Part shown: in pieces, positions 9,019 through 64,000 of the stretch
How positions within the stretch are numbered: the first letter of the stretch is position 1
Layout: the number at the start of each line of letters is the position of its first letter
NCBI RefSeq assembly: GCF_003704095.1
Contig: NW_020843716.1
Span: forward strand, 186,001-250,000
Length of the DNA: 64,000 bases
Direction: 5' to 3'
From: Pocillopora damicornis
Lineage: Eukaryota
Made by a program: the position numbers and the translations under genes
Notes under the pieces: generated by a model
Database searches by the model: none
What the model was told of the DNA's origin: nothing
Seen by the model: the letters and a program-made list of their open reading frames with translations, nothing else

Positions 9019-9486
9019 AAGGTGTAACGGGCAAAATGAGTGTTTTAGGGCAAGAAAGGATGAGGATTAATTGAGGCGACTGAAGTAAATTCTCTCCATT
9101 ATATCTTTAGAGCATGACAATATCACGTTCGAGCTGGTAAATCAAGGTCAAGAAATTAAAGGAATGAACGAAGCCAGGATTTGGCTCTCTATATCGATGA
9201 TTTTATGTAGCAACGCAAAGTGCCAATATTTCAACACTGCTATGTTACGGAACTCAGGTTATCTTATCTTTTGTACAATAGAAAAATGAAATAGCTTACT
9301 GGGCAAAAAAATAGCACACTTGGAAAAAATAACCAGAAATTAGAGGAAAACGTGTTATTGAGGAAAGAGATATAAATTAAAGGAAACTACGTGTGGAATA
9401 TTATGTAACAATACGGACCAATGGACTTATCAATTATCAACAGGAAATGTGTGGCTTGTTCTTGGCGAACCCTGGTGAAGCCGGAG

Positions 9487-9690
9487 TTAACTCTTTCACT
9501 CCTCAGTATGCATATTCTCCATACTGTTCTCTATACATTTCTTAATGTGCTGGCAAGGAGAATTTGTTCAACAATCAAGAGTTTCTCCAGTTGATTATCA
9601 TTTCCTTTGTTATCGTAACTTTAATGTTTGATTCAGAGCTGACATTGAAGGATAATTTAATGCTTGTCACTCTCAGGGATTAAAGAGTTA
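9487..9690. mobile_element. Short non-autonomous element with ttaac(c/t)cttt...aaagagtta ends; related copy at ~39305-39516
   Basis: Terminal inverted repeats with TTAA-like flanks; a related element lies at 39.3-39.5 kb. Confidence 0.55.
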
Positions 9691-11971: not shown

Positions 11972-14900
11972 TGACTCGATGCTTATGCAGTCTCTCGTCG
12001 CCTCTCTTCAGTGCACAATGTCATGTACATGAAAATTTTGTCAGGACTCCTATTTTAAGGATTTCAGCTTGATGAATGAAAACTTTCACTCCAGTAAGGA
12101 TGTCCAAAGCCAATATTTCCGTGATACATTTATTTTTTTTGTCTAGTATTTGTCACCATCGATGTCAAAGATTGCTAACAAAATATAAATTACATTTTAT
12201 GTGCCTTGATTGATATATTTTATTTTTATAATTTTATGGTTTATCTGTCGTCTATTACTCCTTAAAAAAAATACTCAAATTGCCTTAAATTATTAAGTTT
12301 CAGTACCAGTGTTAGTGTATATTGAGAAAAATAAAAAATAGGCGAGTTGATGTAGAATCTTGATGAAATATGGTGAAATACATCTTTCCAAAGCATGTCT
12401 TAAATTTTTAAACCATTGGATGTTTGAGTACAAGTTTTTTTTCTATAGGGCCCCAACTGATAAGTGAAGGGGCCAGAACGTTTAAATTAGTTTGATCAAT
12501 TACCACTATTAAGATCGCCCACTGTAACGTGGGAAACAGATTATAAAATGATAAAAAGATCAGATTTTGCTGCTTTTGTTAAAGGGTTGAGTACTTACTC
12601 GTGCATATCCAATGAAGTCACGAAGGACTGCACCAATGTCAAAACAATTCAACAGACATATAGAAAGCCAGCGATAACAACAGCAAGAAAGATGACCATG
12701 AAAGATTCGGCCATTGATTCACTTGTTTTCCACCAGTTTTCGCGTGATAATCAAAGTTTCATGAGTGGAAATGACGCTAATTTGTTAATATTTTAGAGTA
12801 TGGTGTCAAATGGAAAAAAGGTTATTCCAGAAAAGTTGTATTTAGTATGAATTATTGTCTTCTTGTAGAGCTAATGTAAAAAAAAAAAAGAAAAAAATAA
12901 TAAACTTGGGATAATAAAAGAAAAGAGAAATCACATCGTATTCCTTGAACGTAATCTTTCAGGTGTTTAGGACAAACAGAAAATATCAGCTTTAACCTAC
13001 TTCTCTTCGGAAATGGTAATTAACGTAAAGAAGGTTTGAGGAAAGACGGATGAAACTTTGAAAACCATTAAGAAAATTGAGGACAGATGTGTTATACTCG
13101 TCCGGCCATTTAGAGAATTTCATTCTTTCTGATTCATTATCTGAGCTAAGTAGCTCTTTGTAACTTTACTCAGACGTTCGTAAAATAACTCCTAGCTCAG
13201 AAAACCGGATATTCACGACTTTTAATATCAAATTATGGTACAAATGATAAAAGTTTTTTAAATGACAAGAAAGCAACTACCAATCGGAAACGCACATCAA
13301 CCACGTTTCAAATTGAACAATATGGCAAAACATGGCTGTTTCAAAAGAAAATTGGATTTGACAAGTACAAAAGCTAAAAAAGCAATATTTTTTTTTAAGA
13401 GAAAAAAAATTATTATTAACAAGTGCCATTTCGGGGGAGGTGACGGTTTTTAGATTCCCACCATATTAAATAGTGTACATACAATTTGATTGGGTTTTAC
13501 TTGGGATCTATTGGAGGACAGACAAAAAGATGACGTCATCGTTAAAAACGTCTTGCTTCAGTTAACATATCAAGAAAAATAGATGTCATGTTTCTCTGGG
13601 TCTTTACAGTAATAGATCATAATGAAGACGTCAAATTGTGGTGATCCATTTCTAAACAGACGGACAGAAATATGGAGGCTATTTGTTACCTTTTACTTAG
13701 AAAAGTGGGTGGGCAGCCATTGTAGAAAAATAAATAACCTAAAAATTGCGTCTATGGTGGTGGGTTATTAGTTGACTAAAGTAGCGATGTTAATTTTAAT
13801 CAGGAAAATAAATACGAATATTAAAAAAAATACAAATTAATGAGAAGAAATATTTCGAATGTAATCCATCAAACATTTTCGCCAGTGCACAACGGGTTAA
13901 GGCAAATCAGACGTTGTGACGAGCCTCAAGTAAGACTCACCTGCCTACGAATATCTGAGGGATATTCCCTGATTGATGTTCCCCAGTTTTCAAGTTTTCC
14001 ATCGGATGAGATTCGAGGCTTTTTTCCAATCTAGGTTAATAACAAGATGGCAAAGCGTTAAGCTTTTGTTATAGAATCGAAAACTTTTTGTTAATACTCG
14101 TACTAGAAAACTCTCAAAGTCACCAACCTACAAGTGAAACACTTATTAAACAGCAACTGTTCGGTAACATACGATACCATGATGCATTTGCTTTGAAGGA
14201 ACCTTGGGATATCCAACATCGTAGCCTTAAATTGTATCAATTTTTGGGTCATGTCCGCAGATGAACAGTAGTTATATGCGCGTTTATCACAAGTTTTCCT
14301 CTCGTCTCTCACTGCTCGGTTTTCATACCAGTTGTTCGTTTTAAAATAGCATCAAAAGTCTTTGATGATATTGCGAGGCCGTGCTAGGTGACGTCACAGA
14401 CTCCAATAGTGATCAGGACCCGAGCAATTTCCTTACCAGGTTGTTCATATTAATGGTTTTATGAGGGTAATCAGATATTTGATTGAATATCTTCGTTAAT
14501 TTGATACAGTCATCTAATATCATTATTTGTTTCGCATGTTGCACTTTGTTACATTGACTGGCCCTGGTTAACGCTTGAAACATCAGCTTTAGAAACTTTT
14601 GACTGTGGCTAATTTAAATTATCAACTCAGTGCTAAAACCGAATTATCTTGTTGTCACCCCCGACGACGCGGTACAATGGTTTCTCTGGAAAGGTACACC
14701 TTTTATTCAATTGAGCTAGTCTTAATACAAAATAAAAGATACGTAAAGTATATGAACATGAGAAACGAAGAACGAATTATTATTAACATGTTACGAAATA
14801 TCAGTTACTGCCACAGACAGCATAAACTTGTAAATCAGTGCATATTTATACAAGCAAGGATTGTTACTTGAATTCTCAGGATTATTGCGTACTAACTAAG

Positions 14901-16673: not shown

Positions 16674-17705
16674 TCATTTACAGAAGTTCTTTTTACAGAT
16701 TTTACTAAGCTCACGCGAAAAATTTCGAAGGAAAATTAGGCAAATACATGGATTAACTGCACAATATGAAGAGGCTAATATCCGCGAGATATATCGCATG
16801 ACTTTCTGTATCTTACTACACTCGGGAACCGGTCTTAGTGAAAAGAGGTCAAGGAAAGAAAAAACAACATAAGGAGTCCAACATATAAAAAGTGCCGTTA
16901 CAGTAACGGCGGCCATTCGGTGCAATTTTTTGATACGTTCTCGGTTTCGTCTTTTTCCCTTTTCGGTACGACTTTCAGCCAGTTTATCCTTGCGTGAGCC
17001 GCATACTACAATAGCCGATAGAACAGAGATTGTAAATAGTGGTATTAACAGTACTGTGGTGAATAAAAAAATATTGTAGCGAAGGTGCGCCGATTCGTCT
17101 TCAAAAGCTGGCTCCCAGGTAGGAATGCACAATTGGATCTTGCTGCCGTTGGAGTGGAACGGAATTAGGCGCATGATGTAAAAGTACGGTGCATGAATTG
17201 CTGCAGACGTGATCCACGTAGAAATGATTGCTCTCCAGCGTACATTGAGCGTGATTTTCTTATAGAGCATGGGATAAACAATCGCTAAGAGACGCTCAAC
17301 GAAGATTACGACCAGAGTCTGTGTCGATACCGCCAATGACATGTCACTAAGAAAAGTACACATCTTGCACAGAAATACGCCTCCACTTCCATGAACGAGA
17401 AAAGCGCTGGACCTGATGATTTCTCTTGTTATCACGCGTGGAATTAGAAAGATTGCCATTAACAAGTCAGACGCAGCCATGTTGACAATAAGAAGCATCA
17501 TAGAATCCTTCGCGCTTAAAAACGCAGTGATGAGGAAGGTGTTTCCAAGCAAGGCAACCAGCAGAGTGAGAACATGTATCACTATTGTAACTTGCTCTGG
17601 ACCTACAGGAGCTTCATCATCGGCACAAAGATTTTCTAAAAAGGTGTCGTTGCGGCTCGCATTTTGACTGTTTTCCAGACGATCTGCAGAGACGTTTGTA
17701 TTCAT
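16674..17705 (-). CDS. Orphan class A GPCR, 343 aa
   Basis: 7TM; GN, NMAASDL, ERL, CWTP, NPCIC; clear paralog of the other cluster members. Confidence 0.95.
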   Translation of the reverse strand: MNTNVSADRLENSQNASRNDTFLENLCADDEAPVGPEQVTIVIHVLTLLVALLGNTFLITAFLSAKDSMMLLIVNMAASDLLMAIFLIPRVITREIIRSSAFLVHGSGGVFLCKMCTFLSDMSLAVSTQTLVVIFVERLLAIVYPMLYKKITLNVRWRAIISTWITSAAIHAPYFYIMRLIPFHSNGSKIQLCIPTWEPAFEDESAHLRYNIFLFTTVLLIPLFTISVLSAIVVCGSRKDKLAESRTEKGKRRNRERIKKLHRMAAVTVTALFICWTPYVVFSFLDLFSLRPVPECSKIQKVMRYISRILASSYCAVNPCICLIFLRNFSRELSKICKKNFCK

Positions 17706-34102: not shown

Positions 34103-36569
34103 TACACTTGCTCTTTAATTTTAATAACAAATAAGTCTAGTGGAGCTAATCAGGCCACAAAATAAAATCAATGTCACCGAAGCGAATTGTTTGAAGATCT
34201 TTGAAATCGATTGAAGATCGATCGGTATTTCGAATTTTTGATTTCGGCTATATTTCCACAACTGCGTTTCGTAATGTTCAAGAAAAGAAATAGAAAATGT
34301 TGTTACATTGATTTCGAGAATAACCCGTCAGTTACATTTACACAAAACTTTGTTTCTATTTCTCTTTTCATTAAACAACTTCTTTTGCGAATGAGAGTTT
34401 CATTCCAGCTTCCGCGAGTTATCTAATCGGTAGGGAGTCAACGCTCGACGGGAAAGGGGGCAAGCCAATCAGATTGCCTGTGTTTTACGATAGTTTAGTG
34501 AGCATTTAACTAATTTAAAAGGTATAGAGCGCCAATGATCCCTGAAGACCGCAAATATCTTGAGTCATCCGCCTACGCCTGTCGGATCGTTTTTGCGAAC
34601 GTGACATTTAAGAAAACGCCCGAACACTGCTATTTTTAACTTAAACTTTGCCTCAGTTACTCGACTGGAGCGAGGTCTCCTGTCAAACCCAGTTTCTGAA
34701 AGTATCTTGCTCGGCATACGTGCTCAAACTCCCTTGCTTCCCTCTGTCCGAGGGTTTCTGTAAGTCGTGAATATAGCATACACAATATGTGAGCAATATG
34801 AATGAAATTTCATGAAAATTTAGTCTAACTAAAATTGTTAAAGATTTGCTTTTCAAGTTGGCCTAAATCAATTCAGGCTCAACTCCGTCCAATTTTCCCT
34901 ATATACATCCTGTCATAGTTTTCCTCGGCTGTTGTCTATTTAATATTACCATCTTTTAAATTCCTTATTTTAGGATTGTAAATTATCAGTTCATATTCCC
35001 TTTGACCTGCATTTGACAGGTAGTTGAAGAAATAGCGTAATTACTCGATGAAACGCAGCGGTGTTAATCAATAGTTTAGCGTTTTGATGCGGCCTCTACT
35101 CAAAATACGTTTTCATTTCTTAGACCATGAAAAATATCTCTATAATTTACTCGTTAATCATGACCATGCCGCACTACAAAAACATGGTTAAAGTTGCAGT
35201 ATCCTACTCTTTATTTTATTGAAATGAAATACACTTATTTATGCACTTGGGTCAGATGCAAAGTAATTTCCTCGTTACGTTTCATGAGTAATACGTACGG
35301 CACATGAGACGAAGTTCTGCTTGCTGTCACAGTGAAATACCGGAAGACGAGGGCGATTAAGAGAGACTTCCTAATTCCCCTTCTTCTCTCCACCTGGGAA
35401 TCTCCACGCAATTTTTGAAACATTGTATTGTTTAGCTGGCCATACAGTTTGGTAAAACAAGTTGCATCAGAATTAAAGAAACTTATTTGAATCATGATTA
35501 TTAACAGGAATGACAGCTATCAATGGGTCCACTTACCCCCCGACCATCTATACACGGTTTATTGCAAAGTGCGACAAGAGTGGTTACAAAATGCGATAGC
35601 TTTCGGCGTGATGGTCGCAGTGTGCGACAGTTTTTTTTTCTTATAAAGTGCGATAAGTGTTTACAAAGGGAAAATGTTATTACAGAGAGCGACAGAAAAT
35701 ATCTTGAAGTGAGGCCAAGACTTACGGCAAGCCGGCCGCTTTCAATTAAAACAGTATCGAATGACCACAAGAGAACACGAGTGATCGTGATATGTCTGGA
35801 GACTTTAGTACTGTCTTTGTTTCTATACACGCTATAAAGATAACGGGCTCGTATTTATGATAGAAATAACTCATTACTTCGAACTCAGAACGGTCACCAG
35901 TTAGCGATCGGGTTAAGATATATAATATAAGATATATAAGCGGGTTAAGATATATAAACACGGTAAGCTTTTTAGCCATCTTTCAAAAACCGTTAGAACA
36001 GACATTGCCACAGGGGTCGTCGCTGTGTCCGCTTTGTATGACATAGCGGAGTGATATGAATTCAGGTGTAACAGCATGATTTGTTCTCAATCTATCGCAG
36101 AAGTTGAAGTTAAGAACTTTTTGAGTCTTATCTCTCAAGGTACATGTGAGTGCCTTAGTCTTACTGCCTCCTAGGCATGAGTCGTTAAAAGCGTTCAATG
36201 ACTCTGATTAACAAGTGTTACATAATTTGGTGGCGTCATTTCCTCTCAAGGACGTCACGCAGACTACTTAACTAAGTAGTGTAAATGAGTCTCCTGTATT
36301 ATTTATAGTCACATCTTTTTCTTGAGTTATTAACGGAGAAAGGACCCATTTAACTTAAGCTCTTTATTGGAATTCGTAGGATTGGCCACCTTTCTGATGT
36401 GTTGAAAGTAACTCAAGACACAAGGGAACGATTTAAGGGCCATAGAAGCTGCAAATGCTCCATAATAATCCTTTGTTAGAGTTCGTAGCTACGGACGCTG
36501 CGGTGAAACCATCCTAGTGTGACCTATGACGGGAGGAATATTTCATTCCCTCTAAAGACGGAGCGAAGA

Positions 36570-37547
36570 ATGCTTGGAAACAATTCCTCAACGATTTTGC
36601 ATCGACCTGGTTCAGACAGCAATGAGACAAAGTGTGCTGCTTTCACGGTTGGACTAGTTGAAGTTTATATCACAATCCATTTTGTCACTATTCTGGTGTC
36701 CTTGGTGGGAAACATTCTTCTGATTATTTCCTATGTGAGAATGAAGGAAACGTTAATGCTCCCTATCGCCAACATGGCTGTATCTGACCTGCTGACTACA
36801 CTTTTTCTAATGCCTCGTCTTCTTAGACGAGAGCTCACCGGATCCAACGATTTCCTCATTCGTGGAGTTACAGGTACATTACTGTGCAAACTATGCTCCT
36901 TCCTAAGCGACATATCGCTATCTGTGTCGACCCAGAGCTTAGTACTCATAGCTGCTGAGCGATTTCTCGCGATTGCTTGTCCAATTTTATATAGGAAGGT
37001 AATGACGGTGAAAAGACGCTATCTCTTCGTAGGCTTAACATGGATAATATCCATGGGAATTCATTCGCCATACTTTTACGCTTTCCGTCTGTCTACTAAT
37101 AATATTTGTGAAATGAACTGGGAACCAGCTTTCGATCATAAGTCGACGCAGCCACGCTACGTGCTTTTTCTTTTCGTAACAGTTTTGCTTCTACCGTTAA
37201 TTACTATCTCTGTGCTTTACTGCATTTTCGGCGTCAAGATTCGGCGAGATAAAGTAGCTTCGTCTCGAACCGAGAGAGGGACCTTGAGACACCAGGAACG
37301 CAGCAGAAAGTTACAAAGAATGGGAATAGCTACTGTAACGGCGTTCTTAATCTGTTGGCTCCTTTATATAGTGATAAATGTTTTCAAAGAGCTTTCTTCA
37401 AATACTGATCATGAGTGTAGCCAAGGTTTTAAGATAGTAGACAATATATCTCGCGTTTTAGCAAGCTGTTACTCTGCTGTAAATCCCTGTATTTGCTTTA
37501 TATTTGTGAAAAGCTTTTCTCGTCAACTTTTCGCGTTATGCAGATGA
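36570..37547 (+). CDS. Orphan class A GPCR, ~325 aa from ATG 36570, C-tail truncated
   Basis: 7TM; NMAVSDL, ERF, CWLL, NPCIC; the ORF-track start at 36519 is a GTG; closest paralog is 43575-44729. Confidence 0.92.
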   Translation: MLGNNSSTILHRPGSDSNETKCAAFTVGLVEVYITIHFVTILVSLVGNILLIISYVRMKETLMLPIANMAVSDLLTTLFLMPRLLRRELTGSNDFLIRGVTGTLLCKLCSFLSDISLSVSTQSLVLIAAERFLAIACPILYRKVMTVKRRYLFVGLTWIISMGIHSPYFYAFRLSTNNICEMNWEPAFDHKSTQPRYVLFLFVTVLLLPLITISVLYCIFGVKIRRDKVASSRTERGTLRHQERSRKLQRMGIATVTAFLICWLLYIVINVFKELSSNTDHECSQGFKIVDNISRVLASCYSAVNPCICFIFVKSFSRQLFALCR

Positions 37548-43574: not shown

Positions 43575-44729
43575 ATGATTTCTTCAAACGCAAACAACAT
43601 ATCCGTGGTTTTGGACCATGCTGGTTCGGACAGAAATGATACTTCTACGCCAACAAAATGTGCCGCTTTCACTGTTGGACCCATGGAAATTTATGTCACA
43701 ATACATGTTCTCACTCTTTTAGTGTCCTTGGTGGGAAACATTCTTATCATTGCTGCTTATGTGAGAATGAAGGAAAATATTTTGCTCCCTATCGCCAACA
43801 TGGCTGCATCTGATCTGCTGACTGCACTCTTTCTAATGCCTCGCCTTTTAACAAGAGAGTTCACTCGATCCAACGTTTTCCTCGTTCGAGGAGGTACAGG
43901 TACATTTCTGTGCAAGATGTGTACTTTTCTAAGCGACGTATCGTTGTCTGTGTCGACCCAGAGCGTATTGCTTATAGCCACTGAACGATTCCTTGCTATT
44001 GTTTATCCACTTCTGTATAAGAAGGTGTTCACGGTGAAAAGACGCTATCTCTTCGTCGCTTTAACATGGATAGCTTCCATGGCGATTCATTCGCCATACT
44101 TTTACATTTTCCGTCTGTCTGCCGATAACACGTGTCAACCCAACTGGGAACCAGCTTTTGATCATGAGTCGACGCAGCCACGCTACCTGATCTTTCTATT
44201 CATAACAGTTTTGTTTTTACCGCTGCTTTCTATTTCTGTGCTTTATGGTATTATCCATGTTAAACTTCAGAGAGATAAATTGGCTTCGTCTCGAACTGAG
44301 AGAGGGGCTGTAAGACATCAAGAACGCAGCAGGAAGTTACAAAGGATGGGAATAGCTACTATCATTGCGTTCTTACTTTGCTGGACGCTTTATATTGGAA
44401 TAAGTGTTTTCAAACTATTTTCCCCAAATGCTCAACAGAATTGTAATATAGGTTTCAGGATGGTTGATCATATTTCTCGAGTTTTGGTAAGCTGCTATCC
44501 TGCGGTAAATGCGAGCATTTGCTTCATTTTCGTACAGGGCTTTACTCAGCAGCTTATAGGTATGTGTAGACGAAAACGCCAACCATCAGTCACTACTGAA
44601 ATAGTACAAGATTGGTCTGCGGAGAACAACTGCAGTCGCATACGATCTGAATCAGCGCAAACATTGAGCTCGTTACTGATCACGAGAAACGGGAACAATT
44701 GCTCACTCGTTGATTCCCATCTAGTCTAA
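43575..44729 (+). CDS. Orphan class A GPCR, 384 aa
   Basis: 7TM; NMAASDL, ERF, CWTL, TM7 NASIC. Confidence 0.95.
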   Translation: MISSNANNISVVLDHAGSDRNDTSTPTKCAAFTVGPMEIYVTIHVLTLLVSLVGNILIIAAYVRMKENILLPIANMAASDLLTALFLMPRLLTREFTRSNVFLVRGGTGTFLCKMCTFLSDVSLSVSTQSVLLIATERFLAIVYPLLYKKVFTVKRRYLFVALTWIASMAIHSPYFYIFRLSADNTCQPNWEPAFDHESTQPRYLIFLFITVLFLPLLSISVLYGIIHVKLQRDKLASSRTERGAVRHQERSRKLQRMGIATIIAFLLCWTLYIGISVFKLFSPNAQQNCNIGFRMVDHISRVLVSCYPAVNASICFIFVQGFTQQLIGMCRRKRQPSVTTEIVQDWSAENNCSRIRSESAQTLSSLLITRNGNNCSLVDSHLV

Positions 44730-46067: not shown

Positions 46068-47168
46068 TCAAATAATATGCGTGGGCAGCTTTTTCCTATA
46101 TCGTCGCATTTTACCCCCATTTGTATCGCGTTGATGGTTCCGTTTGCACATTGCACTCAATTCGCGAGAAAAGACTTTTAGGAACATAAAACAAATACAA
46201 GGATTAACAGCGCAGTAAGAGGTTACTAACACCCGAGATATAAAATAAATTATTTGAAACGTTTCGCTGCATTCAGGAACTGACGTAGGTGAAAAAAGCT
46301 GCAGAAAAGTAATAACAACAAAGAGCGTCCAACATGTCAAAAACGCTGTTAAAGTAGCTGTGACCATCTTTTTTAAATTATTGTTACGTTCATATTTTCT
46401 GCGAGCTCTATTTTCACTCAGACCTGTCACCATTTTGTCAACCCTCCGAAGCTTAATCATCGTCGTAAGGCACAAGATTGCCACCACAAGGAGGGGTATA
46501 AATACAACTGTAACGTATAAAAAGGTGACATAGTGTAATTGAGCTGATCCATTGCTAAAGGCGGGTTCCCAGCTTGGCACACAAAACAAGGTTCCTGTGC
46601 CATTTTGTTTTTTATGTGTAATCAGTCGAAAAATGTAGAAATAGGGCGAGTGCAATGCCATGGCCAGGATCCACGTGACGGCAATGAGCACATAGCGAGT
46701 TCTCACGGTGACTTTCCTGTACAAGAAAGGATACACTACAGCCAAGAAGCGCTCCGCGGCGATCAATATCAAGTTCTGTGTTGATACCGACAGAGACACG
46801 TCACTCAAGAAAGTGGACATCTTACAGAGAAGTAGTCCTCCTAATCCGTGAACAAGGAAGGCGTTGGATCTGGTGATTTCTCTTGTTATCAAGCGAGGGA
46901 TCAGAAAAACTCCGACAAATAGATCAGAGGCCGCCATGTTGGCAATAAAGACAGCGATCTTTTGTTTCATTCTTGCGAACGCAAGTATAAGAAGTGTGTT
47001 TCCTGCTAGAGCAATTAACAACGTAGAAACATGTATTAAAACCATTGTTACTTGTATCGGACTCATGTTTACTCCAAGTTTTTCGCAATTTTCTTGTGGA
47101 GAAGTTGTGGTGTTGTGGAAACCTCCAACGTCCAAATTATCAGAGGAAACATTTACTCCGAGAGCCAT
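46068..47168 (-). CDS. Orphan class A GPCR, 366 aa
   Basis: 7TM; NMAASDL, ERF, CWTL, NPCIC. Confidence 0.95.
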   Translation of the reverse strand: MALGVNVSSDNLDVGGFHNTTTSPQENCEKLGVNMSPIQVTMVLIHVSTLLIALAGNTLLILAFARMKQKIAVFIANMAASDLFVGVFLIPRLITREITRSNAFLVHGLGGLLLCKMSTFLSDVSLSVSTQNLILIAAERFLAVVYPFLYRKVTVRTRYVLIAVTWILAMALHSPYFYIFRLITHKKQNGTGTLFCVPSWEPAFSNGSAQLHYVTFLYVTVVFIPLLVVAILCLTTMIKLRRVDKMVTGLSENRARRKYERNNNLKKMVTATLTAFLTCWTLFVVITFLQLFSPTSVPECSETFQIIYFISRVLVTSYCAVNPCICFMFLKVFSRELSAMCKRNHQRDTNGGKMRRYRKKLPTHII

Positions 47169-53535: not shown

Positions 53536-53853
53536 TTACATTAAGGCCTCATTATATTAAGAGTTTGTCACTAATTTTCGACTACATATGCTTGTCACGT
53601 GCAGTTGAATGTAGTTACTTGGCAGACGGAGGAGGAAAAGGTTATCAATATTTATGCAGTTTGTCAATACGATTGCACAAGGACAAGCATCGTCTGACAG
53701 AAAGACCAACAGCGTCATTACTGGTTATTTCGGTAAGGTGAATACTGAAGCATGCACTCTTTGATCTATGGATGAATTAGGCATTTCGGCCAGAAAAATA
53801 CTTCCTTAAGTTCCATGTTTTCTCTGCTTTTTTTCAGGCTTTGTGATCAAGTT

Positions 53854-54966
53854 ATGAATTCAAGTACACAATTCGCTTTAGAGGCTTCGAAGGCTGTGAA
53901 TGCCAGCGACAACAGTACCCTTACTCTGGAAAGTTGTGGTATTGTATTTCCAAATGAGATGATAATCACTATACACTTTTTGACGCTCTTTACGTCCTTG
54001 ATAGGAAACACTCTCCTCATCGTTGCATTTCTGAGAATGAAAGAAACGATACTGCTCCTCATTGCCAACATGGCTGCATCTGACCTACTCTTAGCGCTGG
54101 TTCTTATGCCTGAATATATTATATATGAACTAACTGGGTCCTTCGAATACCACGTTCGTGGTGGTGTAGGTACTTTTCTGTGTAAGATCTGCCCTGTTCT
54201 AAGCGACGCATCATTGTCAGTATCAACCCAAAGCTTAGTCTTGATCGCAGTCGAACGGTTACTGGCACTAATGGCTCCTGTACTCTATAGGAGGATAACC
54301 GATAGTAAACGGAGGATTATCGTCATCTGCACTTGGATTGTGGCCATACTTCTTCACTCGCCCTATTTCTACGCGATGCGACTAGCTTCGATCCATCACG
54401 AAGGTACCTTTATCCAAGTTTGTTATCTAGACTGGGCACCAATTTTTGAACACAGAACAGCACAACTTCGTTATGGTATTTTTTTATACATAACCGTTTT
54501 AATTGTACCTATTCTTGTAATTTCTGTGCTTTACGCTGTAATCGTTTTCAACCAACGAAATGACAAAATGGGCTCCAGTCGAGGTGAAAAGTGTGCAATA
54601 CGAAAGAAACGAAGCGTCAAGAATTTAAAACGGATGGCTGTAGCTACAGTAACGGCACTATTTTTATGCTGGACGCTTTATATCATAGTGTTTACATTCA
54701 AACTTGTCTCTCCAGAGACAGTTCCCAAATGTAGTAAATTTTTCCAAGCGGTGGAAAATGTGTCTAACTTGATAGCAAGCTGTTATTGTGCAGTTAATCC
54801 CTCCCTTTGTTTCATTTTCATCAAAAGTTTTTCGCGTCAGCTAAGTTTTTTGTGTCAACGAAAATCTAATCGACAGCGTGGCGCGAAGTGTACTCACGCG
54901 AATGTCAAAATGGGAGAATCTGGTTCTGTCAGCTGTCTGACGAGATTAAGTTTACGTGGCAGTTAA
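53854..54966 (+). CDS. Orphan class A GPCR, ~370 aa from ATG 53854 (probable 5'UTR intron 53733-53837)
   Basis: 7TM; NMAASDL, ERL, CWTL, NPSLC. The ORF-track ATG at 53815 lies just before a pyrimidine tract ending ttttcag (53837), with a donor gtaag at 53733. Confidence 0.93.
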   Translation: MNSSTQFALEASKAVNASDNSTLTLESCGIVFPNEMIITIHFLTLFTSLIGNTLLIVAFLRMKETILLLIANMAASDLLLALVLMPEYIIYELTGSFEYHVRGGVGTFLCKICPVLSDASLSVSTQSLVLIAVERLLALMAPVLYRRITDSKRRIIVICTWIVAILLHSPYFYAMRLASIHHEGTFIQVCYLDWAPIFEHRTAQLRYGIFLYITVLIVPILVISVLYAVIVFNQRNDKMGSSRGEKCAIRKKRSVKNLKRMAVATVTALFLCWTLYIIVFTFKLVSPETVPKCSKFFQAVENVSNLIASCYCAVNPSLCFIFIKSFSRQLSFLCQRKSNRQRGAKCTHANVKMGESGSVSCLTRLSLRGS

Positions 54967-57472: not shown

Positions 57473-59567
57473 TTAGACCGAGGATCCTTTCTCCTTATTC
57501 TTTGGCTGAATTATTTTTAGTATTCCTTGGACTAACAGCTGTGCAATTTCGTTATCATCCGGATGCTTCCCAGGCCGCTGACTTTGCTCTGATGCAGCCT
57601 CTTTAGATCGGTTATCGTCAGATGCTACATCATCTGCACGATCTGCCTTGTCATCTTCCTTTTCACCAGATTTCGAATCGTTAAAGTTTCCTTTTTCCTT
57701 GACTGGTTTTCTCAAAGAGATCGGAAAATCTTCGTTTCCAATACTCAATGTGGCCTCACCATCAGGAAAATTAGCTGGAAATTCTATTGCAAAATCTCGT
57801 TGTGCAAAACTTAGTGCAACGCATAGATCGTGGGTCTCTTTGTCTCTGCTTGTACCAGTTACTTGAAATTTCCCCTGGAGAGCGCCATGGATCTTTCCAA
57901 AAAGGTCCATGCCTTCTTTCACCGAGTACCATTGCTCTCTTTTTGTTTCGGCCTGTTGCGATGAAGTTGAAGTCCAGCGAAACTCGCCCGTTACCAGATC
58001 ATTGTGATATTTCTTTTGTGTTCCACTGAAAGGATTACTGAGGCGGAAAGCGCTGTCTTTCGGCAGTACCTCTGTGAAAATAAATCATAGAATGTTTACA
58101 ATAATTGGAAGAACAGATGAGTAAATAATCCAAGTGTAGGTTCTTAACTAACCGTATTTTGAAAGCATCCTGAGTCTTAGAAATATTCAACATAGCACTG
58201 AAAATCTAACGTTGCAATTACCTGAGAGCCACTACAGGGCAATGGCTTTTGCTGAAAACGATTAAAATTTTGGCCATTTTACAGCTGACGGCTAATGAAT
58301 TTCTGTTAAGTTAACAAAATAATTTTACTTATTTACGCCTGACGGCTCAATTATTTTGCTGCTTTACAACAAGACCCTCTTTTTTAAACAACCACGAAAC
58401 AGTTAATACGCGGTAAAACCGTCATTTGCGCCTAAAATTCTCATTATCGTAATTTCATTACTGTTATTTTCCCCCTATGGAGATATGAAAATAGCTAATC
58501 TTTCGATTATGCCTTGACGGGGAAGGGAGAGCGTTGCAAGACAAGACGAAACATGATCCTGCTCAGCAGTATGTTAAAAAGAAAAATTTATACGACTGAT
58601 AGGGGGAATCTAATCTTGCCAAGTTTCCCATTATTGCAAGGTCCTGTGTTTGGTGGAAATCATGATAACGAGGGCGCGTGTGTGCACCGATTCATGAATA
58701 ATTATTGTAGTAAATACTCTAACGGCGACTGGTTCCCCAATTTTTTAAAATAAACAATCGAATATTTAAGGATATTACCGAGTATTCCCTTCAATGAAGC
58801 TTCCTTTTCAACGACACAAACTTGCTTCACGTCCAGTGTTTCGTTGTCCACACCAACCTTCATATATACAAAGCAGGGCTTTCCTTCACCTAGGTTTACA
58901 CCTTAAACAAAATATATGAATCATCATGAACTAAACAAAATGAGACCTCGCAGTGAACTTTTCACTACCTGCAGAACTTAAGTGGCTATATAGTTACTCT
59001 TCTTGGCCAAAAGCTAACTCAATTTGATGGACAAGACATCTATTGCTTAACAATTGTTCATTTTAAGTAGAGGGAAGGGGTGAGTGAGTATTCTATTTCG
59101 TTTGCCTCCAGTTCTAGGAAATTGATTCTGTAGTCAGGCCTCGTTTATATTTCACAATCGTATAGTCAAATTTCATTTGCTTCGATAAATTTTGAAATAT
59201 TCAACAAGGCGAACCACCCTCCCAAAAAATTAAATTAAAGACGAAACAAACCGAGCGAAAGTGGTACTAGTAGTTGACTTTAGCACATAGAATAAAATAG
59301 ACACTGTTACTTCCCCTAATAGGACACTGAATTTCGTTTCTTACCGCCAGATTCTTTTGTGCTCCATATCCCAACGCGTCGAAGAGCATGGGGTTTGAAC
59401 AACTCTTCTTCATCTTCGTCCTTAAGACTACCAGTGATATACTGCACGACTGGCTGATTTGAATGAGTCCACAGACCAAACAGATGTCCGCTCTCAATCC
59501 GTTTTTCTACAACATGTTGCTTAATCTGCCTAAGTTCACCCTCGTGGATTGTCACTGTCAGACTCAT
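57473..59567 (-). CDS. 3-exon gene, ~310 aa: N-terminal degenerate JAB/MPN-like domain + E2/RWD-like domain + acidic tail (exons 59567-59345, 58889-58779, 58071-57473)
   Basis: Canonical GT-AG introns, both phase 1 (G|gtaag, tag|GT, G|gtaat, cacag|AG), join into a 933-nt stop-free frame: MSLTVTIHEGELRQI...ESGHLFGLWTHSNQPVVQYITG...VGIWST...CFVYMKV...LKGILEVLPKDSAFR...QWYSVKEGMDLFGKI...IEFPANFP... An alternative in-frame exon 2 acceptor lies 12 nt upstream. Confidence 0.8.
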
Positions 59568-59696
59568 CTTGGCTCGTACTGTCAACCGAAAAATATCAGT
59601 AAATAAGTCGCAATACCGAAGCAGCTTGGTGCGATCAGAGCAAAATGTTTTTCACTTTTTATTGTGATGAGCTTTTTCATGGGCCGTAAATAACAT

Positions 59697-59751
59697 TTCT
59701 AAGAAATCGTGACGTCATGTGATACTCTGAGCCTACCGGTTTTTCCCGGAA
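59697..59751. promoter_or_regulatory. Putative promoter cluster: GAS TTCTAAGAA (59697-59705), CRE TGACGTCA (59710-59717), GAS TTCCCGGAA (59743-59751)
   Basis: Exact consensus matches 130-185 bp upstream of the JAB-like ATG. Confidence 0.55.
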
Positions 59752-60027
59752 ATGTTTACATGTCAGTTAAGGATATTCAGATTTTATTAAAGTGAGTATA
59801 TGTAACGAGAGTTAATGGTTCCATGACAAATACCAGCTAGAGAAGAAATGGAATGAAAAACCAAAGAAATCAGTCACAGTGTCATAAATTCACAAATCCT
59901 ATTTTCTCCGCCTGAGCTTGTTGAATCAACTCTTCGTCAAAGCTGTATGAAAATCGCAAAAATTTCGATCGGCTCTTGCGAAGTTTTGAAATAATAATGC
60001 ATCTTATTTGACGGAAAGTGCGAGCTA

Positions 60028-60038
60028 TTTCGGTTTCC
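60028..60038. promoter_or_regulatory. ISRE/IRF-type motif TTTCGGTTTCC in the divergent intergenic region
   Basis: Matches GAAANNGAAA on the minus strand. Confidence 0.4.
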
Positions 60039-61035
60039 AAATACAGCCACGACTATCGCTCGGTCCCGAAAGTGTGTAGGATTAATAATTGCTCTGGCGA
60101 ATCACGTTTTTGCGGTTAAATTTTGCTGTTGTCCTGTCTTTCTAACCTGCGTAAACGAAATGATTTGGGTTCTAGGAAAAAGGCTTGGACGAATCAACAT
60201 TTAACATGGCAATCTTAATTACGAGCCACAAAAGTTGTACAAAGCGAAAGTCTTTAAATCTGCCTTCCCACTTCCCAAATCCCTGCCAAAAGATTATTCT
60301 AAAAGCAATTTCGAAGCTAAGAGGTATGACATAGTGCTTGCTTAATATGGAGCAGCGAATGAACTCGCTAAATAAGCAAACCGGTTTATCCAATATCTTA
60401 AAACTTTACATTAACTGCGTCTATAACAATTTACAATTTGTCATCAAACATTTCTTTAGAGTGGGATTAGAGAGCTCAATGACAACTAGTGTCAACTGCA
60501 TAATAATCTTAGGATCTTTTATTTTTGTCTAACAAAAATATATACATTAAAGACGTATCAGTTCGTAGATTTAGGTTAATAGAATATTAAGTCGATCAAT
60601 CTTTGGAATTTTTCCTTGTGTCCTACTACAGTTAAGGGGCGATATTAATAGCAGGGACCCTATAATTTTGAAAGCAGCATTTCTCTCAGAGGTTCGATTA
60701 TATTGAGGGAATTGAAGGCATGACATTTAAATGTTGTCATGAAAAAAGGATTGAATTGATAAATGTAGTTTATGTACATGAAAAGTACATAGACAGACGA
60801 AATTATGTGACCTTACATGGTAGTGCAGCCCTGCTCGGGGTGGACATGACGTAGCGAAATTGCTCGAGGCATTTTATTTCCTCAAATTGCTTTCTTTGCG
60901 CATGAGCGCATCATTCCTAATTCAAAAAACAATATTTAATGTTAACAACTATACCTCCCTCACTTAAACTGGAGAATCATTGCTGTGCACATCCTATCAA
61001 GAGAACAGAACAGCTAAAACAACCAACTTGAAGTG

Positions 61036-61485
61036 ATGCCCTGGTCACAGGCCCAGAGACAGAGGCTCGGCTTTGAGAAAACGTTGCTGGAGAGCTATTT
61101 TCGTGACAGAGTGACATGGATTAGTCCCGGAGACCAAACGATAGTGGAAGTTCGAGCTACATGCACCAACGACAGACAGTACACGCTGAGGATTTATCTG
61201 CCAACTGATTTCCCCAATTCCTGTCCCAACATGGTTGTCAAGGCATCGGCTAGATTGAGGGCGCGTAACGGAGATCTTCTAGAGTGCTATCCAGGAGACA
61301 ACCACATCGGGAAAACCGTAGAAGGCTACACAGGCATCTGCCATTTCAGGCCAAATAGATGGAGGAACGATAATACTTTGTATCAGGTGACGATGAAGGG
61401 TCTGATATGGCTGGAAGCTTATGAGGCGCATCTTCGCACCGGCCAACCCTTGAGCCAATTTTTGACCGATATGCCAGATCGTTAA
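61036..61485 (+). CDS. Non-canonical E2/UBC-fold protein, paralog 1 (149 aa), putative catalytic Cys102
   Basis: UBC-like pattern in order: QRLGFEK helix, YTLRIYLPTDFPNSCP, NH...G..GICH, W...NTLYQV; ~58% identical to paralog 2 by manual alignment. Confidence 0.85.
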   Translation: MPWSQAQRQRLGFEKTLLESYFRDRVTWISPGDQTIVEVRATCTNDRQYTLRIYLPTDFPNSCPNMVVKASARLRARNGDLLECYPGDNHIGKTVEGYTGICHFRPNRWRNDNTLYQVTMKGLIWLEAYEAHLRTGQPLSQFLTDMPDR

Positions 61486-63070
61486 AATATAAATTATGGT
61501 TGGTCGGGTAGACAGAACGATTCGATAGTTGTACACCAAACTGTTCATAGACTTTATAGAGAAGATGCTTGCTTTCATTCGATCAAGATTACTGAATGAT
61601 AACTTTTGGTTGTAGTTGTAAGCGGAAAATACTTAAATATGGATTACAGCGATGTCATTTTTTCTTTGTTCCAGTACGAAGACAATGAGTTATACATGGT
61701 CCTCTCTCCCGGGTAACGATAGTTCATGAAATAAACGATCGGCAGAGCAATATTTCAGATCTACAATTTAACAATTGTAAGGTGTTGGTCTTAAATTCAA
61801 CATACACTAAAATAGGCTTGTCGTTCAAAATTGCGTTTCTAGTCACGATTTTTCTGTAAATTCACCCAAAAGCATTGAATTTCGCAATATTCTTGGAAAC
61901 CAATGTAAACAGATGGATGCAGTGTAATATTTCAGAGAGAGATTTTCAAAAAGTCTAATGCTGAAAGGACCGCTCGTGATAACACATTTGTCTGGCGATA
62001 TATCTAATCTGGAAATGCCAATAATCACGATGTGGGTCCCTTCTTCTATGCGACAGGAGCGATAAGAAAGCGCAACTGAATGCTAATATTCATTCATAGA
62101 AAAATTAATGCAAAGTCGGAAGTTTGCATTTCACTTCGAAATGATACTCTCAACTTCACTAGTTATTTGGATTTTTCAGTCTCTTGTTATGGAGTTATCA
62201 TTTTCTCTGTTGTAAAAAAAACTCTCAGCTTTGAAGACTAAGTAAATAGTGGGTATTTACAAGCTTTTCTAGCATTCCATGAAACGAGTGTTGTTTGCGG
62301 ATAGGCCTTTGGGGGGAAACGAACATCTTGTTCGATTCCAAGAAGAACTCACGTGTATAATTTGAGTCAAACTACCGGTCTTTCTAAGAAAAAACATATA
62401 ATTAGAAAACAATTTTTTAAGTATCTTTCCTAGGACGACTTTCATATTCCTCTCATTTTTTAATTGGGCAGGTTTATAAGAGTTCTGGGTCCACTCCAGT
62501 ACGGTCCTTTCCGCCCCAGCTCATTGCAGAGTTCCATCGCGCTTCGATAGAGTTCTTAGGCATGAAAAATTTTGAATGATACAAGGAACTTGAACCATGA
62601 CCGCGTAACAATGGTAGGTTAACAACATTTTCGCCGAACTTTCGAGAGCGTTCCGATTGTTATTGTCTTTTGTTTGAATCACCATACCATGCAACATGTA
62701 TGCTAGATATTATTTTCTTTCCTTATCCTTTCTTCTTTTTATTTGATGGAAATGTTGCCCTTGTCGACGGGCTCAACGAAGATAAAATCAGAGCGTGTGT
62801 TCTAAGAATTGTTCACTGTCCACATTGAGACAGAATTCGTCATTAGAAGTGCCCGTAAGTTAAAGTTTAAATTTTTAAGACGGTCAGTTTTAGTTTCCGT
62901 TGAAATCAGAAAGAAATTAAAATAAATTACCTGCTTCGAAGAGTAGCAGTCAGTCGTACACAAAAGTCTGTTGTATTGTAAACAAAGTTTTCCACGAAAA
63001 ACGCTCACGCATCATTTACTTTTATCTTCCTGAATTTCCGAGAGCTACGCAATGCTATCTACGCATGCTC

Positions 63071-63087
63071 CCATTTCCGGGAAATGG
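63071..63087. promoter_or_regulatory. Extended palindromic STAT/GAS site CCATTTCCGGGAAATGG ~110 bp upstream of E2-like paralog 2
   Basis: TTCCGGGAA core (63075-63083) inside a 17-bp palindrome. Confidence 0.55.
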
Positions 63088-63189
63088 AAGCGGTTCGAAA
63101 ATAGTTGTCCGCAGCATTTGAATTTAGCGAGTGTTCCTCGTTTGAAACCTGTACAGACAAACTAAAAGTTGCTTTTATCTTTCTTCAAA

Positions 63190-63633
63190 ATGTCATGGTC
63201 AGCAACTCAGCAAAAAAGGCTTGGATTAGAGAAAAATATTCTCGAGAAGTACTTCGGTAACAGAGTTTCATGGATCAATCCGACTGGCGATACGAAGGTT
63301 GAAGTAAGAGTGACAACCACCAGTGATAAACAGTATACACTCAGGGTGTATCTTCCTGGAGATTTCCCAAATTCATGTCCACAGATGATAGTCAGTAATC
63401 CTTCGTCCTGTCTAAGAGCGAAAGACGGTTCTTCGCTGAGCGGAATGAGTGGGATTAACCATACATTAGGCAGTATAGATGGTTGCACTCAGATCTGCCA
63501 TTTTAACTCGTCCTTGTGGAAAGATAACAACACACTGTACCAAGTGGTTATGAAAGGGCTGATATGGCTGGAGGGGTACGAAGCACATCTTCGCACCGGG
63601 CAACCTATAAATAAATACTTGCAAGAGATGTAA
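63190..63633 (+). CDS. Non-canonical E2/UBC-fold protein, paralog 2 (147 aa), putative catalytic Cys103
   Basis: KRLGLEK, YTLRVYLPGDFPNSCP, NHTLGSIDGCTQICHF, WKDNNTLYQV, MKGLIWLEGYEAHLRTG; ATG in aaaATGt context. Confidence 0.87.
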   Translation: MSWSATQQKRLGLEKNILEKYFGNRVSWINPTGDTKVEVRVTTTSDKQYTLRVYLPGDFPNSCPQMIVSNPSSCLRAKDGSSLSGMSGINHTLGSIDGCTQICHFNSSLWKDNNTLYQVVMKGLIWLEGYEAHLRTGQPINKYLQEM

Positions 63634-63708
63634 ACAAATCGACTGAGGACAGGAAACTAACTAAGGATCGGGACAAACATTTCTGTGACAATACCATTTC
63701 TACCTGAG

Positions 63709-63764
63709 CCTAAACCTTGATCCTTCGGTATCGGTGACCTAAACCTTGATCCTTCGGTATGGGT
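63709..63764. repeat. 2 x 29-bp tandem duplication in the putative 3'UTR
   Basis: cctaaaccttgatccttcggtat(c/g)ggt at 63709 and 63738. Confidence 0.9.
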
Positions 63765-64000
63765 AAATTTCATTGATTACTGTTTAGATTTAGAACTGGA
63801 TGAAGTTTATTTTTTAAAATGCTGGCTAAACCTTCACCTCCGCGCTTTGAAGTCCAGATTGTAATTATCATAATTATTATTCCCATTTTTCTTTGTGTGG
63901 CTTTCCTGTATTATTCGATTTCTGTCAATTTTTTTGGAGTCTGGCGAAGGATCTTACTCTCCAGAGTGTTAGCAATATCGTGGAAGACTCGATCACATCC

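Follow-up and report, generated by a model that had tools for sequence, protein, structure and literature searches.

Predicted bacterial-type ubiquitin-conjugating (E2) enzymes in the genome of a stony coral

Background

Bacterial E1/E2/JAB cascades (type II CBASS, Bil and Bub) were only recently shown to conjugate proteins in antiviral defence, and they are discussed as antecedents of ubiquitin signalling. In type II CBASS, an E2-E1 fusion (Cap2) and a JAB peptidase (Cap3) act on a CD-NTase whose C-terminal tail is the conjugated species. In E2-CBASS, a stand-alone E2 such as Serratia marcescens SmE2 (PDB 8HSB chain B; Pfam PF26395) works without an E1 or JAB and is covalently tied to its CD-NTase through C101 and K159 (PMC12948482). 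The Bil and Bub systems follow a four-component Ubl/E2/JAB/E1 logic in mobile defence islands, with conjugation demonstrated and with beta-grasp Ubl modifiers of one to three domains (10.1101/2024.11.21.623966). Canonical eukaryotic E2s (UbcH5/UBE2D; PF00179) share the UBC fold and carry an HPN motif upstream of the catalytic Cys.

Here we analyse two small genes in a 64,000-nt stretch of Pocillopora damicornis DNA (contig NW_020843716.1, positions 186,001 to 250,000; hereafter the window, which contains 218 N). They encode proteins of a bacterial E2 family, part of a four-gene kit (tag peptide, E1, E2 and JAB protease) that corals seem to have taken from bacteria and expanded. In our literature searches we found no paper linking this family or cassette to cnidarians or describing it in other animals, nor any biochemical data for this family in any organism.

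Results

The E2 genes and their surroundings

The features of the locus, in window coordinates, are as follows.
61036-61485, + strand: E2-1 coding sequence, 149 aa, with FPNSCP (58-64), His90, Cys102-His103, Trp109 and C-terminal helix 115-135.
63190-63633, + strand: E2-2 coding sequence, 147 aa, an ancient paralog with Cys103-His104.
60836-62836, + strand (inferred from the coding sequence): approximate extent of an unspliced E2-1 transcript, with a 5' UTR of about 200 nt, the coding sequence and a 3' UTR of about 1.3 kb.
63117-63990, + strand: approximate 5' part of the E2-2 transcript, which runs on past 63990.
57473-59567, - strand: divergently oriented neighbour gene homologous to the bacterial JAB protein, with the coding part of exon 1 at about 59343-59567, a middle exon near 58775-58879 and a last exon ending at 57473.
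63075-63083, no strand assigned: perfect palindromic GAS-type site TTCCGGGAA, about 40 nt upstream of the start of E2-2 RNA coverage and one of 14 TTCNNNGAA sites in 58790-63083.

The observation made in the initial annotation, that two E2-fold paralogs keep the active-site Cys but lack the HPN motif, is confirmed. Both reading frames are intact, with an in-frame TAA at 61015 upstream of the first ATG, and BLASTP aligns the two proteins at 85/147 identity (58%) with one gap, exactly the value given there. Both proteins carry FPNSCP, NHI or NHT (89-91), ICH with Cys102 or Cys103, and the C-terminal WLEAYEAHLRTG helix, in which the one position that differs is A or G. Identity by decade is lowest at residues 81-100 (6/20) and amounts to 11/30 over residues 81-110. 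The ICHF motif and W109 are themselves conserved, and the low-identity stretch is the loop plus beta-hairpin just before the Cys. This region is also the most variable part across the whole family.

A third tandem copy, E2-3, lies just past the window end (G000:C351:254080-254520 on the same 345-kb contig, about window 68080), and three more copies are elsewhere in the genome. E2-2 and the third copy are 89% identical with a dN/dS of 0.31, while the comparison of E2-1 with E2-2 gives a saturated pS of 0.79 against a pN of 0.27, so that the genes are under purifying selection. Both coding sequences are colinear with polyA RNA-seq contigs and contain no intron. For E2-1, a contig in run X6 spans 60836-62836, with a depth of 0.25 in the bin just upstream (60670-60836) and 0 in the bin just downstream, and for E2-2 contigs from 63117 onward are present in runs X6, X1 and X2. 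These are assembled contigs, which do not give the strand and cannot exclude some DNA carry-over. The neighbouring JAB-like gene is spliced, with a junction at 59343 in four RNA runs.

This neighbour was identified by tblastn with 12 JAB queries (10 bacterial and 2 coral), of which 11 hit exon 1 (E 1e-9 to 1e-4) and 4 bacterial ones hit the last exon colinearly (E 0.001-0.03), each exon having been searched separately and never as a joined model. Its JAB metal site is lost (GIWSTKE where active copies have GEWHSHH), whereas its C-terminal FPxxFP (RWD-like) domain is kept. The window keeps the JAB-E2 adjacency, but its JAB is degenerate. The genes lie among 7tm_1 GPCR genes, at a GC content of 0.37-0.44 and 1-2 kb apart, and the orthologous locus of another coral (L070) shows the same order of GPCR, JAB-like gene and E2, including the same three JAB-like exons, with only exons conserved.

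Predicted fold and active site

The AF2 model of E2-1 (pLDDT 92, pTM 0.87) is a UBC fold with topology a1-b1-4-hairpin-Cys-a2, and the top Foldseek hits are all E2s. VIA-align gives Z scores of 10.3 for the Tsg101 UEV domain, 10.2 for the CBASS E2 8hsb_B (132 residues aligned), 9.8 for BubCD and 9.7 for UFC1. To place the active site, we aligned the family against a canonical coral E2 with hhalign, which puts H90 on the HPN His, ICH on ICL with Cys102 on the catalytic Cys, and W109 on the conserved Trp. This alignment has low probability, because the template was a single sequence, and the placement of the Cys rests on alignment and topology rather than on a coordinate superposition. Conservation of the Cys across homologs, which had been named beforehand as a condition that the reading could fail, holds: among cluster representatives the Cys is kept in 121/131 (about 92%), H90 in 133/136 and W109 in 126/128, and the Cys is invariant in the bacterial alignments. 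A few eukaryotic paralogs have lost it and read ISH, IRH or IDH.

Compared with canonical eukaryotic E2s, the proteins share the UBC fold, the YPxxPP-type motif and the structural His, catalytic Cys and Trp in the same order and spacing. They lack the Asn and Pro of HPN, the local motif being (D/N)-H-(T/I), have a 17-residue insert before the His and a His immediately after the Cys, and lack helices a3-a4. Matches to every curated E2 or RWD model are below threshold for the window proteins: the PF00179 score is 12.6 bits against a cut-off of 27 and covers only residues 35-68, and the Pfam RWD scores are 13.8 and 14.6 bits against a cut-off of 22.8, although some relatives pass the latter (for example family member P0101, at 35.2 bits). 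NCBIfam returned no hit. Searches of PDB sequences with the protein and with family profiles found only matches of the N-terminal YPxxxP region to FANCL, RNF25 and E2s, and no Bil, Bub or CBASS chain.

A bacterial family encoded with JAB and E1 genes

Bacterial members of the family are 43-44% identical to the window proteins over the full length (43% for E2-1 and 44% for E2-2 against a bacterial operon E2). A search seeded with a 14-sequence alignment recovered 47 bacterial loci from more than 10 phyla, in which a JAB gene sits beside the E2, directly upstream of it in nearly all, and a ThiF-type E1 is adjacent in most. The cassette also carries one of two further components. In one subgroup a SMODS CD-NTase ending in LFGxxFG follows the E1, with Cap4/SAVED downstream, which makes it a CBASS with E1, E2 and JAB unfused. 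In the other, which has no CD-NTase or effector, there is a small, mostly disordered protein, frequent among these loci, with an LxFDPxTGxL hairpin and a C-terminal G-[FY]-[FA] motif.

The nearest known relatives are the CBASS stand-alone E2 and Cap2, and not BilB, which the initial annotation had placed beside Cap2 in its comparison set. With SmE2 the family shares a length of about 150-160 aa, the short UBC fold (a1-b1-4-loop-a2), the conserved Cys in the loop after the last strand, and the motif C...W...WLxx[YF]Ex[HW]Lx[ST]G. C101 of SmE2 lies in the loop before the C-terminal helix (PMC12948482), matching Cys102 between strand 98-101 and helix 115-135. The family form of the motif, C...W...WLxxYExHLxTG, parallels C...W...WLFYFEEWLxSG of E2-CBASS; a search of 401 genomes of one bacterial class for CBASS E2 sequences gave one broken fragment, which was used only piecewise, after its stop codon. 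The family differs from SmE2 in its genomic association with a separate JAB and, in most loci, a separate E1, in having CH instead of CL after the residue preceding the Cys, and in lacking the GGG-H tail. In profile searches, the PADLOC E2 model PDLC00876 hits E2-1 at a sub-threshold E of 0.006 and does not hit E2-2, while bacterial members reach E 2e-6; PF26395 is on record for family member P0065, and the nearest ESM Atlas clusters carry "E2-CBASS", but PF26395 did not appear in our own Pfam scans.

With Cap2 and Cap3 the cassette shares the same three predicted activities, and its E1 and JAB score strongly on the PADLOC CBASS E1-E2 and JAB models. It differs in that the proteins are separate, in that the coral-related subgroup has the small FDPxTG...GFF protein in place of a CD-NTase and effector, and in that the JAB carries an extra RWD-like C-terminal domain. 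With respect to Bil and Bub, the candidate modifier here has a conserved core of about 40 residues, predicted as a hairpin plus low-confidence helix (pLDDT 60) and not as a beta-grasp, no solved Bil protein was hit by the family profiles, and the Bub E2 is only a fold-level match.

Origin and the remaining components in the coral genome

In the phylogeny, the coral E2s form one clade (support 100/99) nested within the small-protein group of bacterial E2s. E2-1 pairs with an Acropora protein (99/98), and the named eukaryotic members are scleractinian (Acropora and Oculina). The E2 that is basal within the coral clade belongs to a full cluster on another contig of the same genome (C687), which carries, beside the E2, two or three JABs with an intact EWHSHH...S..D motif, a 429-aa E1 that is 44% identical to a bacterial E1 (ThiF 120 bits), and an 80-aa small protein (E 1.6e-8). 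In the coordinates of this locus (L053), the E1 lies at 7109-8398, an active-type JAB at 2199-2942 and the small protein at 9361-9603 on the minus strand. The E1 and the small protein are single-copy, whereas the E2 and JAB genes have multiplied, since before the two major stony-coral lineages split. No nucleotidyltransferase is present within the approximately 22.6 kb of this contig that was read, up to the contig end (85001-107582), and no CD-NTase was seen in the window.

Discussion

We propose, with a probability of roughly 0.7, that the two genes encode stand-alone E2 enzymes of a bacterial UBC-fold family related to the CBASS E2 and the Cap2 E2 domain, rather than divergent members of the eukaryotic UBC family, and that an ancestor of stony corals acquired the small-protein version of the cassette. 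In this view, JAB would trim the small protein after GFF, E1 would adenylate its new C-terminus, and the acyl group would pass as a thioester to Cys102/103 of an E2, with His90 shaping the loop as the HPN His does and the invariant His103 beside the Cys taking over part of the role of the missing Asn, before the E2 passes the peptide on to target amines. The paralogous E2s would probably aim at different targets or partners. What the analysis establishes is the fold, the residue conservation, the homology, the gene neighbourhoods, the phylogenetic position, the coverage by polyA RNA-seq contigs and the purifying selection, whereas catalysis, including thioester formation on the Cys, the identity of the modifier, the targets and any immune role are inferred. 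The relay may differ from the textbook E1~E2 scheme, because the E1 alignment shows only four invariant cysteines, two CxxC pairs that are probably a zinc site, and no obvious catalytic Cys. The role of the small protein as modifier rests only on gene neighbourhood and its C-terminal motif, the JAB neighbour in the window is catalytically dead, and a complex prediction for the coral E1 with E2-1 scored 0.03, which is evidence neither for nor against binding.

The interpretation given in the initial annotation is thus supported in part. The E2 fold, the alignment of the Cys with the catalytic Cys and the non-canonical nature of the family are borne out, and of the two origins suggested for the intronless genes, horizontal acquisition is the one that the data favour, because the coral clade nests among bacterial E2s and the E1, JAB and small-protein partners are also in the coral genome, while retroposition of a eukaryotic E2 is not supported. 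That these are active enzymes remains an inference from sequence and predicted structure. The claim that the paralogs diversified in substrate or modifier specificity is only weakly supported, since the divergent stretch is variable throughout the family and only three sites are fixed differently between the two orthogroups, although the E2-1 lineage does keep its own conserved loop, YPGDNH..GYTG.

An alternative that we consider unlikely is that the proteins are non-catalytic UBC-fold adaptors, like UEV or RWD domains, which would bind a modifier or another E2, with the conserved Cys being structural or redox-related. The best Pfam hits are indeed to RWD, the top structural hit is the Tsg101 UEV domain, the HPN Asn is absent, a few eukaryotic paralogs have lost the Cys, and the partner JAB proteins themselves carry an RWD-like domain. 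However, true RWD and UEV domains lack the Cys that is retained across bacteria and corals in this family, the E2 is encoded beside a JAB and, in most loci, an E1, which is the setting of an active relay, and the related CBASS E2 forms covalent adducts (PMC12948482). Slightly less likely still is that the coral E2s act as in CBASS, with the C-terminus of a nucleotidyltransferase (a cGLR or CD-NTase-like enzyme) as substrate and conjugation priming or restraining cyclic-nucleotide immune signalling. The sister bacterial subgroup sits in CBASS operons and the nearest characterised relatives are the CBASS E2 and Cap2, but the coral clade nests in the small-protein subgroup, and the coral cluster contains a small-protein homologue and no nucleotidyltransferase in the region read. 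Fast-evolving or retroposed copies of an ordinary eukaryotic E2, or bacterial contamination, are contradicted, despite the intronless coding sequences and weak similarity to UQ_con, by the 43-44% identity to bacterial operon E2s (against 11-20% in structural alignments to the eukaryotic E2s matched), by the tree, and by the host contig, its GC content, the conserved synteny, the RNA coverage and the spliced neighbour.

Here an animal genome carries not one stray domain but all four parts of such a cassette, which gives a tractable case of whole-pathway transfer from bacteria into animal immunity-like loci. It also points to a bacterial variant whose modifier seems to be a short peptide that is not a beta-grasp, something like a detached CD-NTase tail, which could explain what the CBASS E1/E2 machinery recognises. 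A Pfam scan of longer eukaryote-like family members (211-520 aa) showed no informative fused domain.

A further possibility, which we put forward only tentatively, is that stony corals run a complete conjugation system of bacterial origin that does not use ubiquitin, in which the short disordered peptide is handed to a multiplied set of stand-alone E2s that tag different targets. This would probably serve as an inducible innate-immune pathway, given the GAS/STAT sites at the locus, and the same peptide-tagging cassette would be an unrecognised fourth kind of bacterial ubiquitination-like defence operon beside type II CBASS, Bil and Bub. The total of 33 such sites in the window equals chance, but 14 of them fall within 4.3 kb, where about 2 are expected.

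Sequence and predicted fold of the two E2 proteins

To assess whether the two E2-like proteins of the initial annotation are real, we first re-examined their reading frames and found two intact ORFs in the window:

61036-61485, + strand, E2-1, 149 aa
63190-63633, + strand, E2-2, 147 aa

BLASTP between the two proteins gives 85/147 identical residues (58%), exactly the value in the initial annotation, whose observation is correct. Both proteins carry FPNSCP, an NH(I/T) motif, ICH with Cys102/103, and the MKGLIWLE.YEAHLRTG segment, and an in-frame stop lies 21 nt upstream of the first ATG. Identity per ten residues is lowest at positions 81-100 (6/20), which correspond to the loop and hairpin just before the Cys, whereas ICHF and W109 are themselves conserved. 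A third tandem copy (E2-3) sits about 4 kb past the window end, and three more copies are found elsewhere in the 234-Mb assembly.

Curated models detect the proteins only faintly, with 13.8/14.6 bits for RWD, 12.6 bits for UQ_con, 13.3 bits for E2-ntca, and an E-value of 0.006 for the PADLOC 'E2' model. An AF2 model built on 78 homologs is confident (pLDDT 92, pTM 0.87), and its predicted layout consists of a helix at 5-25, four strands, a long ordered loop, a hairpin at 91-101, then Cys102, a short 3-10 turn, W109 and one long helix at 115-135; the a3/a4 helices of canonical E2s are absent. The best 50 Foldseek matches to this model are E2/UEV chains, and an exhaustive VIA-align search ranks the Tsg101 UEV (Z 10.3), the CBASS stand-alone E2 8hsb_B (Z 10.2, 132 residues), BubCD (Z 9.8) and UFC1 (Z 9.7).

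The initial annotation would have been contradicted if the Cys did not fall on the E2 catalytic position or were not conserved among homologs, and we therefore aligned the family profile to an intronless canonical E2 from the same genome. In this hhalign alignment H90 is placed on the His of HPN, ICH on ICL (the catalytic Cys), W109 on the conserved Trp and NTL on NTL, with a 17-residue insert before the His. The placement rests on sequence alignment alone rather than on coordinates, and its reported probability is low because the template is a single sequence. Conservation is strong among representatives taken at one per 50% identity, with the Cys kept in 121/131, H90 in 133/136, W109 in 126/128 and H103 in 105/131, and the Cys is invariant in the bacterial alignments. 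The same genome also holds an intronless canonical UBC-family ORF (contig C2329, locus L058 1465-1986) that keeps HPN but has Gly in place of the catalytic Cys (IGVDML), and that looks like a retrocopy-style pseudo-E2.

A bacterial E2 family in two genomic contexts

A word-indexed search found 136 relatives, of which the named ones come from Acropora and Oculina, and a full HMM search of 1.84 billion representatives found 490 clusters. Many of these are bacterial, and one metagenomic bacterial protein is 43-44% identical to the coral proteins over its whole length. A pattern scan of GTDB genomes then returned 47 loci from many phyla, including Actinomycetota, Pseudomonadota, Bacteroidota, Acidobacteriota, Planctomycetota, Verrucomicrobiota, Cyanobacteriota, Myxococcota and others. 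In nearly all of these loci a JAB gene ends where the E2 starts, and in most a ThiF-type E1 is adjacent, giving the order E1-JAB-E2 or JAB-E2-(small)-E1.

The loci fall into two types. In the first (Bradyrhizobium, Mesorhizobium, Acidobacteriota and others), the E1 is followed by a 290-aa SMODS CD-NTase with a conserved ...LW(R/K)xLFGxxFG C-terminus, plus a Cap4/SAVED effector and a TIR protein, so that these operons are a CBASS with Cap2 and Cap3 split into three genes for JAB, E2 and E1 (Bradyrhizobium locus L020 4976-11335; also bacterial loci L012, L015, L017, L021, L023, L028, L035, L036 and L040). In the second type there is no CD-NTase, but instead a 60-130-aa protein next to the E1 with the conserved core LxFDPxTG(E/Q)L ... 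D ... (D/E)G(F/Y)(F/A), followed by 0-20 more residues (bacterial loci L001 2939-3139, L004 8651-9043 and L006-L033). This small-protein family is absent from Pfam. The core is sometimes present twice in one protein, like a polyprotein precursor, and some members carry two or more repeats, each ending in REGFF, reminiscent of polyubiquitin-type precursors. The neighbors of this second type are typical of mobile conflict islands and include WYL regulators, dynamin-like GTPases, a CHAT protease and integrases.

Three further links tie the family to E2-CBASS. ESM Atlas neighbors of the coral protein carry Pfam PF26395 'E2-CBASS', one coral family member has that hit on record, and an E2-CBASS fragment shows the parallel motif C...W...LWLFYFEEWLxSG and aligns to 8hsb_B. 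In SmE2 the conserved C101 lies in the same loop, before the C-terminal helix (PMC12948482).

Partner genes in the coral genome

Searching the same genome with the bacterial partners revealed a complete coral cluster of the bacterial-type system at the end of contig C687 (94.4-107.6 kb; contig segments L052 9373-9885, L053 819-9603 and L054 1-2582), which contains:

an E2, minus strand
two JAB genes with the intact E...HxH...S..D site, one of which scores 28.4 bits on Prok-JAB, above the cut-off
a 429-aa E1, 44% identical to a bacterial E1 over 277 residues (ThiF 120 bits)
an 80-aa ORF that aligns along the whole small-protein core, LVFDPATGKL...GGFF (E 1.6e-8)
a 170-aa ORF with two FDPxTGK repeats
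a long ORF with three JAB-like repeats, two of them degenerate, of which only the last keeps EWHSHH...S.GD

GC is 0.37-0.44 and the genes are 1-2 kb apart on both strands; this is host DNA, not a bacterial contig. The cluster reaches the contig end.

In the window, the divergent neighbor gene (57473-59567, minus strand) is a homolog of the same JAB protein. When its exons were searched separately, eleven of the 12 JAB queries (10 bacterial, 2 coral) hit the first exon, with E-values down to 1e-9, and four bacterial queries hit the last exon colinearly, at the C-terminal FPxxFP domain. The metal-binding HxH segment is replaced, so this copy is probably inactive. The bacterial JAB-E2 adjacency therefore survives in the coral.

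The E2/JAB locus sits at the edge of a GPCR gene cluster. The window contains a series of intronless ORFs of 342-384 aa (10817-11971, 16674-17705, 36519-37547, 43575-44729, 46068-47168 and 53815-54966), and the two that we tested are rhodopsin-family GPCRs (7tm_1, E 1e-31 to 1e-35). In an orthologous locus from another coral assembly (L070), the order GPCR, three-exon JAB-like gene, E2 is kept, with similarity confined to exons. In the same locus (8287-8739 and 12820-12976), extra partial E2-like stretches flank the intact E2, and an LTR-retrotransposon pol ORF lies 5 kb downstream, which suggests ongoing birth and death of copies.

Origin and age of the coral E2 genes

We built a maximum-likelihood tree (LG+C20, 47 rows) from bacterial E2s of the named GTDB loci, plus two metagenomic contigs, with at least 110 aligned profile positions, together with four copies from this genome and the five named Acropora and Oculina proteins; the unnamed metagenomic representatives were left out. 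The nine coral sequences form one clade (100/99), and that clade sits inside the small-protein bacterial group, with an actinomycete-rich group as its weakly supported sister (91/57). The CBASS-linked E2s lie across the deepest branch, although the root is placed at the midpoint only. The E2 of the complete C687 cluster is the earliest coral branch. E2-1 pairs with an Acropora protein (99/98), so the duplication that gave rise to E2-1 and E2-2 predates the split of the lineages leading to this coral and to Acropora. The selection figures agree with this age: synonymous sites between E2-1 and E2-2 are saturated (pS 0.79) while pN is 0.27, and the younger pair, E2-2 and E2-3, has a dN/dS of 0.31.

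Transcript evidence

PolyA RNA-seq contigs from three studies cover both genes colinearly with the genome. In one run a 2-kb contig spans 60836-62836, with next to no depth just upstream and none just downstream, and a separate block starts near 63117. These are assembled contigs, and they show presence in RNA libraries rather than strand or expression level. The neighbor gene shows a splice junction at 59343 in all four runs examined. One contig (run X2) joins 62612 to 63202 across a GT..AG interval, linking the E2-1 3' region to a point 12 nt inside the E2-2 CDS, so it may be a read-through or alternative transcript, although only 29 nt lie on the shorter side of the joint. Fourteen of the window's 33 TTCNNNGAA (GAS/STAT-type) sites fall within the 4.3 kb at 58790-63083, including the perfect palindromes TTCCCGGAA (59743) and TTCCGGGAA (63075), whereas the window-wide count equals chance.

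Classification and proposed mechanism

The interpretation in the initial annotation was partly supported, in that the E2 reading is right in kind, whereas the evidence that the paralogs have specialized is modest. The proteins are best filed as coral members of a bacterial Cap2/E2-CBASS-related E2 family, acquired together with E1, JAB and a candidate peptide modifier. They do not qualify as canonical UBC enzymes, because they lack the HPN motif and fall below the Pfam threshold, nor as RWD/UEV domains, because the Cys is present, nor as CBASS proper, because there is no CD-NTase. We found no paper describing the cassette in animals or the small-protein variant in bacteria, although the literature searched was incomplete and this absence is only weak evidence that the system is new.

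By analogy with type II CBASS, Bil and Bub, where conjugation has been demonstrated (10.1101/2024.11.21.623966; PMC12948482), we propose that JAB trims the small protein after its GFF motif, that E1 adenylates the new C-terminus, that the acyl group moves to the E2 Cys, and that the E2 transfers the peptide to target amines. While residue conservation, homology, gene neighborhoods and the position in the tree come from the sequences analyzed here, catalysis by these E2s and the role of the small protein as the modifier are inferred. In this view, His90 would play the structural role of the HPN His, and the His next to the Cys, kept in most representatives, may replace the missing Asn; a conserved His C-terminal to the Cys was noted in another bacterial E2-like family by Iyer et al. 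2006 (PMC1779556). The E1 alignment, however, shows only two CxxC pairs as invariant cysteines, so an E1 thioester step is uncertain, and the small protein is predicted as a hairpin plus a low-confidence helix, not a beta-grasp. The resemblance of its aromatic-Gly C-terminus to the CD-NTase tails of the sister operons is suggestive, but it is an inference.

With regard to paralog specialization, only three sites are fixed differently between the E2-1 and E2-2 orthogroups; however, the E2-1 lineage conserves its own pre-Cys loop (YPGDNH.G.T..GYTG) where E2-2 relatives vary. Some family members (P0123, P0134, P0141, P0154, P0155 and P0161), including two-domain tandem forms of about 310-320 aa, have lost the Cys, reading IDH, ISH, IRH or IAH, while keeping the rest of the motif, and are possible pseudo-E2 partners.
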